A stretch of 64,000 nucleotides of DNA from Phaeosaccion multiseriatum. Lineage: Eukaryota > Protista > Ochrophyta, other classes. The notes below the pieces were generated by a model. That model saw nothing but the letters and a program-made list of their open reading frames with translations. It was not told the origin of the DNA and ran no database searches. The stretch covers positions 4,092,001-4,156,000 of the forward strand of contig OZ218953.1 in assembly GCA_965112735.1 (NCBI GenBank). The letters run 5' to 3'. Within the stretch, counting starts at the first letter, position 1; each line of letters starts with the position of its first letter. This document shows, in pieces, positions 782-3,700 of the stretch. A program made the position numbers and the translations under genes.

Positions 782-3700
782 CTGTAGTAGGGGTGGAGAA
801 CAGGGATGGCTGGACTGAGCTAGGTCCTGGGGGGGGGGGACTTACGACAAGCAAGGCAAAGTAATGTCTTCCTCACCTCTCACTTGGTAGTACCCTTTCA
901 TCACCCCGATGGCCTCCTTCATCAGGGGATTGAGGCTGTCGTCCAGCAGCCTCGTTTCCCAGTCATCAGGCACGATGACCTCGACAGGCTCCTTGACACC
1001 GTCCTCCCTTGTGACGCTCAGAGACACCGTCCTGGCATCCTTGGTGTTGAGCCGTCGCTTCTCCTTCACGGCTCGCTGCTCCAAGTCCGTGAGCCCCGCG
1101 AAGTCCAACCCCGTCCAGCCCTCCGGAAGCACCACCCGGACGCACCGACCTTTCTCATCCGTAACGTACACGGTCCGACTGCGTTTAGAGTTCAGCTCCG
1201 CCCTTCTCTCCTTCGCCAGCCTCACCAGCTCCGTGTCCTCACGGTCGTCGCTCTCGGCCCCCTTCGGAGGAAGGACAACCTTCGTACGCTTCCCATTCCG
1301 TGGCGTGACGTAGAATGTGCGAGCTGGTATATGGGGTAGGGTATGGGAATAGGGGAGGGGATGGGGTGGGAGGGGAGGGGAGGGATGAGGGGAGGGACGA
1401 GCGAGGGGGAGGGGGCCATAGTGTGGGGAGTGTAAAGGGTGTAAAGGAGGGGTGGAGAGGAGAGGGGAAAGGGCGTGGGGAGGGGAGGGCGGAGGGATAT
1501 GAGATGGCAGTGTGGCCTACGGTGCACTCACGACGGCGAAGCAAGGAACCTCTGTTCGACGGCCCCATCCACTCCGATGCATTTGATTTACCTCCAAGTG
1601 CACAAACCGAAGAGTACACCTCCGACAGCGTGGGCACGCGTCCATGCCAATCGCCCAGGCCAGAGCAGGCAGAAGGCGGGTGTTGCTGAATGTGGTCGCC
1701 ACAGTAGACCCTGATCTCCAGGCACGGATGCTGGTCGTAGGGCATATCGGGGGCTTCTTGCATCGCGCGGAGGAGCTGCTCCCGTGGGCTGTAATAGGGG
1801 GGGGCTTTCTCAGTGGCAGTGCCATGAGGACAGCCCCCGCTTTTGGTCTGTGTCCCTAACATGGTGCCGCCGTTGCCCTGCCCTGGAGAATGTCGATTGG
1901 ACCCAATCAGCTCGGATGCCACGGCCTCCAAGTCCTTTCGGTTCGCCATGGCCGAGGCTGATTCGGATGCTCTGGTTCTCACAAGCACCACAAAAGACGC
2001 TAGGATGGAGTCCACGTTCACAAGTCCTGCATCCTCCAGGGCACTAATGATGGCATTGAAGCACTTGGCTCCACTGTGTGCGGTGCGCTTCGCATGTGCC
2101 AGCCAGCGCGTCTTCTCGGGATCCTTTGCCGCTGTCTCACCCACATATGTAAAGCCCACCTCATCGTCGGGGAGGCCCGTGGCCATGTCCTCCACAAGCT
2201 GAACAAAGCCGGTGGGGACGGGCGTTCCATTTGCATGCGCCCTGACCAGCCAGTTCTCCAGAGCTTGCGCTACCGGCTCTCGCAGAAGGGGCCGAGGCGT
2301 CGGGTGGCATTCCCTGTGAACAAAAGCGGCATACACACAGCCTCCCTCCTGCTCCTGCCCCCCCTGGGCCGGGGCCGCCTTTTGCTCCGCCTTTTGCTCC
2401 GCCTTTAGCTTGTCAAAGACCTGAGCAAGTCCTTTCACCGTCATGTCCATGTCGAAGCACTTCTCGAAAGCGACACGCAGATCTTGGGGGAGGAGCGCCA
2501 GCACAGCCTCGATACGCTCCAGCGGAAAGTGGCACAGTGCCGTGTTCGTGCCATTCTTCCTTGCTCGTTGCTGGAGAGCAGCGGCACGACCTCCTCCGCT
2601 ATTGTCGCCTGCCAGGCAGGGCCACCAGCCCTGGCCATCGTACTCGAGGTCGAGGAAGCGGCGCGCAAGTCTCTCCATCCTTTGTCTCTCATGGTCTGTG
2701 GGTGCTCCACTCACCCAGTACGTTTTCTTCTCCCTCACATGCTGGAGTATAATGTCCACCGTGAGTTTGGTGCGACCCATCCACCCTCTGGGCTGGTGCT
2801 TGACGAAGAGCCCCCACTTCTGGAGACACAAGGCGTTGATGGTGCAGTCTGCTCCGGGGGAATGTACAAACGCCATGCCGTTGACGAGCTGCACCTCAAT
2901 CGTCTGGGCCTTCAACTCCGGAATGGTGAGCTGCCCTGTGACCTCCGCTTGCAAGGGGACACCTTCCTGCCCCTTCGGTACCGCTCCCCCCCCCGCTCTT
3001 GCAAAGAACAATGATCGGACGCGTGAGGAGAGCCGGCCCCGATTGCCACAAGGCTCACACGGCACAAGGCCCATCCTTTCCCGAAGTTGGGTTTCCAGCA
3101 GGCGAGAGACTCCGTCGAGGGACTTGCGGTCGGGCACGTGAATGTCAATGTCGCTGAGGAAGGTCCCCGCCGGCCCGTGCATGGCAGCCATCGCAACGTC
3201 CCGCACACAGCCCCCGGACACGAGCAATCCCAGCTCCTGCACAAGGTTGAGCGCCATCACCTTCACATCCCTGGGCAGGTGACTCTCCGTGCACTGCTCC
3301 ACTTTCGTTTGTTGCAATGTCTTCAGATAGTCTTGCATACACTTCCGGTTCTCCGCTGCTGCTGCTGCATCAGGCTCGGCGGCTGCTGCTGGTGCTGCTG
3401 CTGCTGGTGCTGCTGCTGCTGCTGCTGCTGCTGCTGCTGCTGCTGCTGCTGCTGGTTGTGCTGCTGCTTCAGGCTCGGCGGCTGGCGGTGGTGAAGCAGC
3501 AGGGGGGGGCTCCTCGGGGGCGGGGTCTGCCGGTTGTCTTTGGTCCACGGTAAAGAATGCCTGCTCCATCCACGCCTCGTTGCCTTCCTCATCGCCGCTG
3601 CTGCCGGACGACTCGTCGTCACTGCTGCAACTGCCGCCCCCGCTGCCGCGTAACCGTTGCTCAGCATCGTCGCTATCGCATCCCCTGCTGATGGAGCACT

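Follow-up and report, generated by a model that had tools for sequence, protein, structure and literature searches.

A long coding exon in a large multi-exon gene

The window, by which we mean the whole 64,000-nucleotide stretch of DNA analysed here, from the GC-rich eukaryote Phaeosaccion multiseriatum, has on its minus strand an open frame of 853 codons that runs from an ATG at 3800 to a stop at 1241-1239. Within this frame we read a large coding exon that includes a nucleotidyltransferase-like domain. The exon and its surroundings are as follows.

1592..3746, minus strand: large coding exon with the domain; 2,155 bases, that is, 718 codons plus 1 base
3746-1592, minus strand: predicted splice sites of this exon; acceptor ...ccccag followed by GAGGAGGAC, donor GGAG followed by gtaaat; read from the sequence
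3747..16351, minus strand: putative intron upstream of the exon; 12,605 bases, almost wholly TCTCTGTC-type satellite
3339..3560, minus strand: Pro/Ala-rich low-complexity linker on the N-terminal side of the domain
2400..3338, minus strand: nucleotidyltransferase-like domain; 313 residues with M1 at 3338; low-complexity linkers on both sides

A chance stop would be expected in the DNA here about once per 30 codons, and the exon is open over 718. The frame is carried on across a phase-1 junction, which joins 1592 to 1323, into the next open stretch. The putative upstream intron has GT at 16351-16350 and AG at 3748-3747, is in phase 0 in both flanking exons, and is filled by a tandem repeat at 3823-16313. 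Codon-position GC in the block 3338-2400 (0.65/0.43/0.72) resembles that of a dynein exon in the same window (0.60/0.43/0.77), and we therefore conclude that the block is coding sequence rather than a chance ORF. The exon is eukaryotic and nuclear; its introns are of the GT-AG type, and its neighbours are a dynein gene and a BP28CT gene.

The host gene is multi-exon, is well over 1,000 codons long and has modules unrelated to the domain. The domain shares this gene with acidic linkers, with Cys/His-rich domains and with an unrecognised domain of 270 residues; duplicated mini-exons and the 12.5-kb satellite adjoin the domain exon. Contigs from four additional runs of this organism carry the stretch without differences. 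These contigs are DNA, collinear and without splice joints, and they are silent on expression. The 269 residues that follow the domain had no match in Pfam, PHROG or PADLOC, in agreement with the preliminary description, which had seen no recognisable tRNA-binding body or tail. Positions 1900-2345 have been read as GIY-YIG, and family scans there were blank.

Motifs of the class II type within the domain

The preliminary description had assigned the domain to the class II nucleotidyltransferases. The five peptide motifs that it quoted all lie in one minus-strand frame, including a 16-residue string around motif B at 2876-2829 (minus strand). We compared the domain with the E. coli enzymes Cca and PcnB and with the phage family Gad2 (Pfam PF26128), whose founding member is WIT28108.1 of Bacillus phage SPbetaL7. 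Residue numbers count from M1 at 3338.

3198..3215, minus strand: first half of motif A, G42 G43 C V R D47; GGCVRD is the class II form GGxVRD
3135..3155, minus strand: second half of motif A, S D63 I D65 I H V, with DID at 3152-3144
2928..3056, minus strand: insertion rich in Gly, Ala and Arg, at about residues 95-137; it separates the motif A helix from the following strands
2883..2900, minus strand: strand I E148 V Q150 L V (IEVQLV); compare IEVATFR in PcnB
2832..2849, minus strand: motif B core, D164 C T166 I N168 A, preceded by G-A where CCA/PAP enzymes have R-R
2787..2807, minus strand: F178 V K H Q P R, like the Gad2 block F(L)KHNSQR in the MAFFT alignment; the F178 column is invariant
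2655..2696, minus strand: Arg-rich helix D215 H E217 R Q R220 M E R223 L A R R227 F, which may correspond to motif D (EDxxR...R..RF)

The class II-type motif set is real, and its order follows that of the head domain in class II nucleotidyltransferases. The GG of motif A aligns with the invariant GG of Gad2 and with GGAVRD of Cca, and GGCVRD would bind the triphosphate. As the preliminary description had stated, the DxD is intact: D63 and D65 are both kept and occupy invariant columns in an alignment of 39 Gad2 relatives. They are probably the two metal-binding aspartates. The insertion at about residues 95-137 lies opposite a gap in every Gad2 row, is without a Cca counterpart and is modelled at pLDDT <50. 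On the strand that follows it, E148 is a candidate for the third catalytic carboxylate.

Our reading of motif B differs from the preliminary one, in which EDxxRRDFTINA was a single motif of CCA-adding enzymes and HSPGA had replaced its templating EDxxR part. That string fuses motif B with motif D: in the alignment of E. coli Cca and PcnB, motif B (R90 R91 D92. T94 I95 N96) is about 40 residues from motif D (E130 D131 P132. R134). The domain's motif B core was aligned with RRDLTINA of Cca by both MAFFT and HMMER, and the altered part is the RR of motif B (GAD vs RRD), which Gad2 also lacks. Where the domain has the motif B core, Gad2 has DFTVCMGA. The F178 V K H Q P R block downstream is absent from the preliminary description.

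The templating motif had also been described as rewritten, but a motif-D-like stretch (HERQR...RLARRF) is still at the expected place; it had been quoted in part, unrecognised. RMERLARRF lies at 2681-2655 on the minus strand. Four residues of the helix (E217, R220, R223, R227) align with columns that are conserved in Cca, in an ambiguous register. The candidate motif D is H216-E217-R-Q-R220 in one register; MAFFT favours another, in which the EDxxR arginine is deleted, and the Gad2 alignment instead puts the counterpart of the Arg-rich helix at T193...R202.

The pol-beta superfamily pattern hG[GS] x(9-20) Dh[DE]h is present as VSGG...SDIDIHV. A composite of GG.[VI]RD, then D[IVL]D[IVLWY] 8-30 residues on, then D.T[IVM]N[AS] 60-130 residues on, has one match in the window read in all six frames (128,000 positions), and this match is in the domain. 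The ordered composite would be expected by chance at about 2e-12 per position, or about 3e-4 per genome (about 1,100 windows), figures that are derived from the separate motif frequencies elsewhere in the window and, with the pattern set post hoc, give an order of magnitude only.

Searches for relatives and weak family signals

No Pfam family, PF01743 and PolyA_pol_RNAbd included, matched the domain or the 853-residue ORF at E <= 1, and Pfam, NCBIfam and PADLOC yielded nothing meaningful for the domain, for the full ORF or for the exons next to it. The Pfam set used does not include PF26128, and true Gad2 is unmatched there; hence, we built Gad2 family profiles. A PDB sequence search returned no match; nor did a word-index protein search at E <= 10 with the domain alone and in its 853-residue context, tblastn against 50,697 phage genomes, or a back-translated peptide scan of IMG/VR. 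Exhaustive phmmer with 699 residues against 1.84e9 representatives found none at E <= 1e-3, and BLASTP comparisons with the Gad2 of SPbetaL7 and with the Cca of E. coli gave motif-sized matches only. Profile comparisons were not significant: hhalign against Gad2 reached a probability of 0.3 (E 0.2, 33 columns covered), custom Gad2 HMMs reached E 0.24 and 0.049 (single comparisons), and a custom HMM of Cca plus PcnB with filters off reached E 0.065 (one comparison). The Gad2 profile itself found no solved relative among PDB sequences.

Several weaker signals point to the same superfamily. The best of 38,880 PHROG families was phrog_1614, 'nucleotidyltransferase' (E 0.027, residues 30-71, 42 residues). 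True Gad2 relatives match this family at 8e-6 and 4e-3, with GG at the same profile positions as in the domain, and a spurious top PHROG match would be unlikely to land in the nucleotidyltransferase superfamily. By ESM features, 19 of the 20 clusters nearest to the whole block are Gad2 or 'poly A polymerase head' (score 0.95, 183-186 shared features). For residues 138-313, without motif A, the clusters were nine of Gad2 and one of NTP_transf_6 (0.91-0.94). The learned features thus place the phage family Gad2, and not CCA/PAP, closest to the domain.

Conserved columns were compared by shuffling. Against the 39 Gad2 relatives, the domain has 14 matches versus a mean of 8.3 (sd 2.2) for shuffled sequences, and 6 of 330 shuffles reached 14; the matched columns, each at least 90% conserved, are G42, G43, D63, D65, Q145, G162, D164, F178, T193, R202, Y207, G248, G249 and F271. 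Against 23 Cca sequences plus PcnB, there are 37 matches versus 27.6 (sd 3.5), a number reached by 1 of 200 shuffles. The two tests give p of about 0.005-0.02. All these signals have the same few motifs behind them and are not independent. For the class II assignment in the preliminary description, the motifs and their order stand; no profile method shows membership, and the learned features lie nearest to Gad2 rather than CCA/PAP. In the alignment with CCA/PAP enzymes that it proposed, conserved columns of Cca and PcnB are matched above the shuffled mean, and the profile is not significant.

Comparison with class II enzymes and with Gad2

The domain resembles class II enzymes in the spelling of motif A (GGxVRD...DxD), in the motif B core D.TINA, in an I-E-V strand as in PcnB, and in L.HV followed by an Arg-rich helix resembling EDxxR..R..RF. 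Unlike those enzymes, it lacks the RR of motif B (RRDxTxNA) and the E-D before it, and its motif D is at best HExxR. The spacing from DxD to E is 83 residues, compared with about 35 in class II enzymes, and the spacing from GG to DxD is 7-13 residues longer than in Cca and Gad2. The domain also leaves the PF01743 profile unmatched, is without the neck, body and tail for tRNA binding, and, unlike CCA enzymes, is not a housekeeping protein of a single-domain family.

Gad2 is Gabija anti-defence 2, and its mechanism is still not known (bioRxiv 10.1101/2023.05.01.538930; PMC12904381); a February 2026 review lists both its substrate and its mode of action as not known (PMC12904381). The order of blocks is shared between Gad2 and the domain: h-h-(A/S)-G-G, (N/S)-D-h-D-h, a V-Q strand, D.T / G-A, F-(L/V)-K-H-(N/Q), T...R, and G-G. 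In both, the RR of motif B is missing, and DxD is invariant in Gad2. Both match phrog_1614, with motif A in the same register. However, Gad2 has GGxITS where the domain has GGxVRD, and the domain carries insertions of 7 and 40 residues and has no counterpart of the C-terminal domain found in Gad2. As proteins of 270-440 residues, Gad2 members stand alone in phages or prophages, whereas the domain is one module of a eukaryotic gene with introns, and there is no significant profile match between the domain and the family. We rejected the possibility that the domain is Gad2 proper on two grounds: the profiles are not significant, and this is a eukaryotic nuclear exon, not a stand-alone phage gene.

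Structure prediction

AlphaFold run on the single sequence gave a useless model (pLDDT 35). With the Gad2 alignment the mean pLDDT was 55, and the model is good only for residues 20-95. There, a strand at 39-42, a strand at 63-68 and a helix at 71-89 have pLDDT 77-87, and the N-terminal part has the order helix-strand-GG...strand(DxD)-helix; the model is partly circular, since its input alignment is that of the Gad2 family. pLDDT is <50 over motif B and 30-45 around the E148 strand. Foldseek with this model found nothing at E <= 1e-3, although the sub-threshold list consists almost wholly of pol-beta-fold transferases, with the class II enzyme 4wby in the top row. VIA-align gave a best Z of 5.7, which is inside the noise range, and a sub-threshold list that is likewise pol-beta-fold. 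The CCA enzymes 4wby, 3h37 and 1ou5 are among the weak structural matches. We conclude that structure prediction is not decisive for this domain: the GG/DxD unit has pLDDT 77-87, but the mean pLDDT is low and the fold matches are sub-threshold.

Interpretation

Our favoured reading, which we hold to be probable, though well short of certain, is that the domain is a very divergent pol-beta nucleotidyltransferase of the branch that includes class II CCA/PAP enzymes and Gad2, and a module of a long, lineage-specific, multi-exon nuclear gene. The analysis shows motifs in a fixed order, coding character, a lack of close relatives, and family signals that are weak but agree. From these we infer the fold beyond the first 95 residues, catalytic competence and the type of substrate. 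In such an enzyme, G42-G43 and the next helix would hold the triphosphate of the incoming NTP, and D63, D65 and E148 would coordinate a pair of divalent metals. D164, T166 and N168, which correspond to motif B minus its two arginines, would touch the sugar, and the Arg-rich helix 215-228 may line the base or acceptor pocket. Working with no nucleic-acid template, the enzyme would add nucleotides to RNA or DNA ends at their 3'-OH, or to some other acceptor hydroxyl.

Loss of the motif B arginines, or splitting of the core by the 40-residue low-complexity insertion, could mean that activity has been lost. The domain would then be a nucleotidyltransferase-derived pseudoenzyme with the same fold, a binding or scaffold module of the large protein. 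We consider this unlikely. Both arginines are gone (GAD vs RRD), the insertion does split the core, many Gad2-invariant residues are lost, with 14 matches among the columns conserved at 90% or more, and divergence is too deep for any relative to be detected; however, the residues most important for catalysis, namely GG, D63, D65 and the carboxylate on the IEVQLV strand, are all kept, and Gad2 is also without RR, yet its DxD is invariant. We give the same low weight to a chance resemblance, in which an orphan segment, folded otherwise or not stably folded at all, happens to carry short strings like motifs A and B. All profile and structure tests fall below significance, the single-sequence model reached pLDDT 35 and the motif pattern was defined after sight. 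Nevertheless, chance would give the ordered motifs at only about 3e-4 per genome, the superfamily of the best PHROG family is also that of the ESM neighbours, including those of the half without motif A, and the shuffle tests give p of about 0.005-0.02.

It is very improbable that the exon belongs to a decaying pseudogene or to a domesticated mobile or viral fragment that is no longer expressed. Such an origin would fit the lack of any RNA run with the exon, the adjoining 12.5-kb satellite and duplicated mini-exons, and databases without any relative, but not 718 open codons in DNA with roughly one chance stop per 30 codons, codon-position GC resembling that of a housekeeping gene, or GT-AG junctions that preserve the frame into neighbouring exons. 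Lastly, we assign a negligible likelihood to a divergent form of the organism's housekeeping tRNA CCA-adding enzyme. The class II hallmarks GGxVRD...DxD and D.TINA would be expected of one. However, PF01743 and the body and tail RNA-binding domains are unmatched, and the gene around the domain runs to well over 1,000 codons and has modules of unrelated kinds. To our knowledge, CCA enzymes are universally conserved and readily detected, and the exhaustive search was blank. Given the blank profiles, the absence of relatives and the large-gene setting, we rejected this candidate and conclude that the domain is not the cell's tRNA CCA-adding enzyme. The preliminary description was correct on this point; the gene that surrounds the domain is a giant orphan with many exons.

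Returning to the divergent nucleotidyltransferase that we favour, a broader proposal is tentative, and we think it rather doubtful: that this alga has a set of lineage-specific, fast-evolving Gad2-like nucleotidyltransferases fused to varied modules, that Gad2, known so far only as a phage counter-defence enzyme, has a eukaryotic branch, and that these proteins possibly act on nucleic-acid ends in antiviral or genome defence. The case for the domain is built on signals that are weak but agree, in a protein for which no relatives are detectable; its immediate value is as a candidate for modelling, once paralogues and orthologues are in hand, and for a simple activity assay. CCA-adding and poly(A) enzymes are the textbook example of nucleotide addition that is template-free yet specific. 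If active, the domain would be a eukaryotic multi-domain relative of these enzymes and of Gad2. With its carboxylates kept, its sugar-reading arginines lost and its base-reading helix altered, it would be a natural experiment on the choice of nucleotide and acceptor.

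A coding stretch with ordered nucleotidyltransferase-like motifs

The 313-residue nucleotidyltransferase-like domain (3338-2400, minus strand; residues numbered from M1 at 3338) is coding sequence. It lies in an open frame of 853 codons, running on the minus strand from an ATG at 3800 to a stop at 1241-1239, in DNA of 60% G+C where stops are expected about every 30 codons. Its codon-position G+C is 0.65/0.43/0.72, compared with 0.60/0.43/0.77 for an exon of dynein heavy chain elsewhere in the window. The five motif strings named in the preliminary description, which had read the region as a class II nucleotidyltransferase, are all present in this single translated frame:

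3215-3198, minus strand, GGCVRD
3155-3135, minus strand, SDIDIHV
2900-2883, minus strand, IEVQLV
2876-2829, minus strand, motif B string of 16 residues
2681-2655, minus strand, RMERLARRF

We searched the window for an ordered composite, GG.[VI]RD followed by D[IVL]D[IVLWY] at 8-30 residues and D.T[IVM]N[AS] at 60-130 residues. Across 128,000 six-frame positions, the single match was the query domain itself. Background frequencies of the separate motifs give a chance rate of ~2e-12 per position, or ~3e-4 per genome of this size, to be read as an order of magnitude only because the pattern tolerances were picked post hoc.

Search for relatives

Judged by database searches, this protein is a sequence-level orphan. 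The domain had no family match in Pfam, NCBIfam or PADLOC scans, no PDB sequence match and no tblastn match among all phage genomes; an IMG/VR peptide-pattern scan and a word-index protein search, run in two forms up to E 10, were equally blank. Exhaustive phmmer comparison of 699 residues with 1.84 billion representative proteins gave 0 matches at E <= 0.001. The Pfam copy used does not contain PF26128, the family of phage Gabija anti-defence 2 (Gad2) proteins. The founding Gad2, from phage SPbetaL7 (OQ921347.1, 109563-110765), itself had no Pfam match, while its relatives carry PF26128.2 in their precomputed annotation; the blank Pfam scan therefore says nothing on Gad2 membership.

Convergent signals of probable nucleotidyltransferase homology

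The best match among 38,880 PHROG families was phrog_1614, annotated as nucleotidyltransferase, at E 0.027, with residues 30-71 aligned to profile positions 29-63. We count this match in favour of homology, since a false match at such an E-value would land on a random family. True Gad2 relatives also match phrog_1614 (8e-6 and 4e-3), with GG at the same profile positions as the query. By protein-language-model features, 19 of the 20 clusters nearest to the whole domain were Gad2 or 'poly A polymerase head' (score 0.95, 183-186 shared features), and residues 138-313 alone, without motif A, retrieved clusters of Gad2 (nine) and NTP_transf_6 (one), with scores of 0.91-0.94.

In shuffle tests, MAFFT placed the query, or a shuffled version, into a fixed family alignment, and identities at family-conserved columns were counted. 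With 39 Gad2 relatives and columns at least 90% conserved, the query scored 14 against a shuffle mean of 8.3 (sd 2.2), a count reached by 6 of 330 shuffles; at columns at least 70% conserved, 3 of 330 equalled the query. With 23 gamma-proteobacterial CCA-adding enzymes (Cca) and the E. coli poly(A) polymerase PcnB, the query scored 37 against a mean of 27.6 (sd 3.5), and 1 of 200 shuffles reached that value.

An AlphaFold model built with the Gad2 alignment predicts helix, strand ending in GG, DxD strand and helix over residues 20-95 (pLDDT 77-87); this model is partly circular, with a mean pLDDT of 55 and values below 50 across motif B. A single-sequence model (pLDDT 35) was of no use. Foldseek gave no match at E <= 1e-3; its sub-threshold list consists almost entirely of pol-beta-fold transferases, headed by the class II enzyme 4wby and continuing with TENT5, TdT, Cid1, TglT/MenT, pol lambda and OAS1. 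The best VIA-align Z was 5.7, and the CCA enzymes 3h37, 4wby and 1ou5 scored 5.2, 5.1 and 4.7, all in the range that the tool calls common.

Direct profile comparisons leave some room for a resemblance by chance: hhalign aligned 33 columns of query and Gad2 with a non-significant probability of 0.3, and custom HMMs with all filters off gave E-values of 0.24, 0.049 and 0.065 as single comparisons, none significant. Moreover, the supporting signals cannot simply be multiplied, because all read the same few motifs. We consider chance improbable and true homology to the pol-beta superfamily likely. The evidence, though convergent, is weak.

Templating motifs and family placement

The preliminary description treated 'EDxxRRDFTINA' as one motif, with its first part replaced by HSPGA in the query. 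Alignment of E. coli Cca and PcnB contradicts this, as the string merges motifs B and D, which are ~40 residues apart. Motif B of E. coli Cca reads R90 R91 D92. T94 I95 N96, preceded by E85. D87; motif D, E130 D131 P132. R134 ... R137.. R140 F141, follows 40 residues past it. In class II enzymes, recognition of the CTP/ATP base falls to Asp and Arg in motif D, and recognition of the ribose to RRD in motif B. The reported loss of EDxxRR holds for the acidic pair and two arginines before motif B, which are gone, but a motif-D-like stretch remains: D215-H-E217-R-Q-R220-M-E-R223-L-A-R-R227-F occupies the expected place. One register sets H-E-x-x-R against E-D-x-x-R; the register preferred by MAFFT pairs RMERLARRF with RVARFAARY and deletes the templating arginine; the Gad2 alignment pairs T193...R202, not 215-227, with the Gad2 counterpart of the motif D helix. 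Sugar and base selection probably do differ from those of CCA enzymes, as had been proposed, but for reasons that are partly other than those first given.

In motif spelling, the query resembles class II enzymes more closely than Gad2 does: it has GGxVRD where Gad2 has GGxITS, I-E-V as in IEVATFR of PcnB, D.TINA where Gad2 has DFTVCMGA, and L.HV followed by an Arg-rich helix. In architecture and several blocks it is more Gad2-like: RR is missing ahead of motif B, F-V-K-H-Q-P-R corresponds to F-L-K-H-N-S-Q-R of Gad2, T193 and R202 fall on Gad2-invariant columns, a G-G pair lies at 248-249, and the spacing from Q-strand to motif B is short. The two families are themselves linked, through the Gad2 matches to phrog_1614 and the Atlas clusters with the Gad2 Pfam that are named 'poly A polymerase head'. 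By testable membership criteria the query falls outside both class II and Gad2, and we therefore file it at superfamily or branch level only.

Gene structure and neighbourhood

The domain is carried by a large exon:

3746-1592, minus strand, large exon, acceptor ...ccccag/GAGGAGGAC, donor GGAG/gtaaat

The predicted junction 1592/1323 (phase 1) keeps the frame into the following open stretch, and 877/826 (GT-AG) keeps it into a Cys/His-rich open frame downstream of the domain (3-826, minus strand, 290 codons), which exits the window edge. Its segments include CVCKDHDH, CRGSWC, CRFWG, HEVGCIHYD and CHTCGHLH; no Pfam family matches it significantly, since the Bowman-Birk match (E 0.0014) falls short of the family cut-off. 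Upstream, a putative intron of 12,605 bases (16351-3747; GT 16351-16350, AG 3748-3747) has phase 0 exons on both sides and is occupied by 12.5 kb of tandemly repeated TCTCTGTC-type satellite (3823-16313; periods 8, 16 and 24; 83-86% matches). From these three frame-keeping junctions, the domain is predicted to be a module within a long multi-exon gene. No other exon of the gene matched a Pfam family. The 269 residues after the domain (1593-2399, minus strand) had no match in Pfam, PHROGs, PADLOC or the exhaustive phmmer search, and OTU-like and GIY-YIG readings (the latter for 1593-2399) were unsupported by family scans.

The 12,605-base intron closes with 60 bases (cactcacgttgcc...ccag) that are similar to the 3' end of the adjoining 78-base intron (~16486-16409). 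An exon-intron unit is tandemly duplicated at 16500-17330 on the minus strand: gatgggacggggccagcaaaactttcgg, acceptor ...ctcctgtcag/GTGGCAT, mini-exon, then ccctctag/CACCAGTTTAGCGCTCCAGG...GAGAAGGAG/gtgagc. The two copies yield two near-identical mini-exon pairs upstream of the large exon.

Neighbours in the window are a dynein heavy-chain gene, a BP28CT/HEAT (UTP10-like) gene and microsatellites; these ordinary housekeeping genes, at 48332-57238 (minus strand) and 46298-47614 (plus strand), mark the contig as nuclear and its source as a flagellate eukaryote. Two dynein exons are unusually long: one of 1,254 codons spans the stalk through the C-terminal domain, and one of 473 codons encodes AAA3-AAA4. 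Long repeats lie at 43120-43538, 62282-62532, 19255-19486, 53788-54148 and 54791-55511, and comprise the microsatellites (TC)210, (ACAT)63, (GGAA)58 and (TCAG)89 and a purine-rich minisatellite of 50-base units.

Proposed activity

We predict, with rather better than even confidence, that the domain is an active enzyme. It would catalyse two-metal nucleotidyl transfer, with D63, D65 and E148 as metal ligands, the triphosphate held by G42-G43 and the next helix, the sugar contacted at D164, T166 and N168, and the base or acceptor at the 215-228 helix; the Gly/Ala/Arg-rich insertion 95-137 would form a surface loop. The acceptor may be the 3' end of RNA or DNA, or some other hydroxyl. No family match pointing to one came from the modules on either side, which are acidic linkers, the unrecognised 270-residue region and the Cys/His-rich domains.

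A pseudoenzyme would share the fold and lack the activity predicted from these residues; we give it the same low probability as chance resemblance. That the domain is an unexpressed relic seems less probable still: it lies in a long open frame. The sequencing runs containing the large-exon stretch are solely collinear DNA contigs, which confirm the DNA sequence, not expression or splicing. Least credible is a housekeeping CCA enzyme of the organism, which we regard as extremely unlikely.

The domain is probably a very divergent new form of a known enzyme type, in an unusual eukaryotic multi-domain setting and with no detectable relatives. The chemistry of Gad2 was still unknown as of 2026 reviews (PMC12904381), and a eukaryotic branch, if true, would widen that question.
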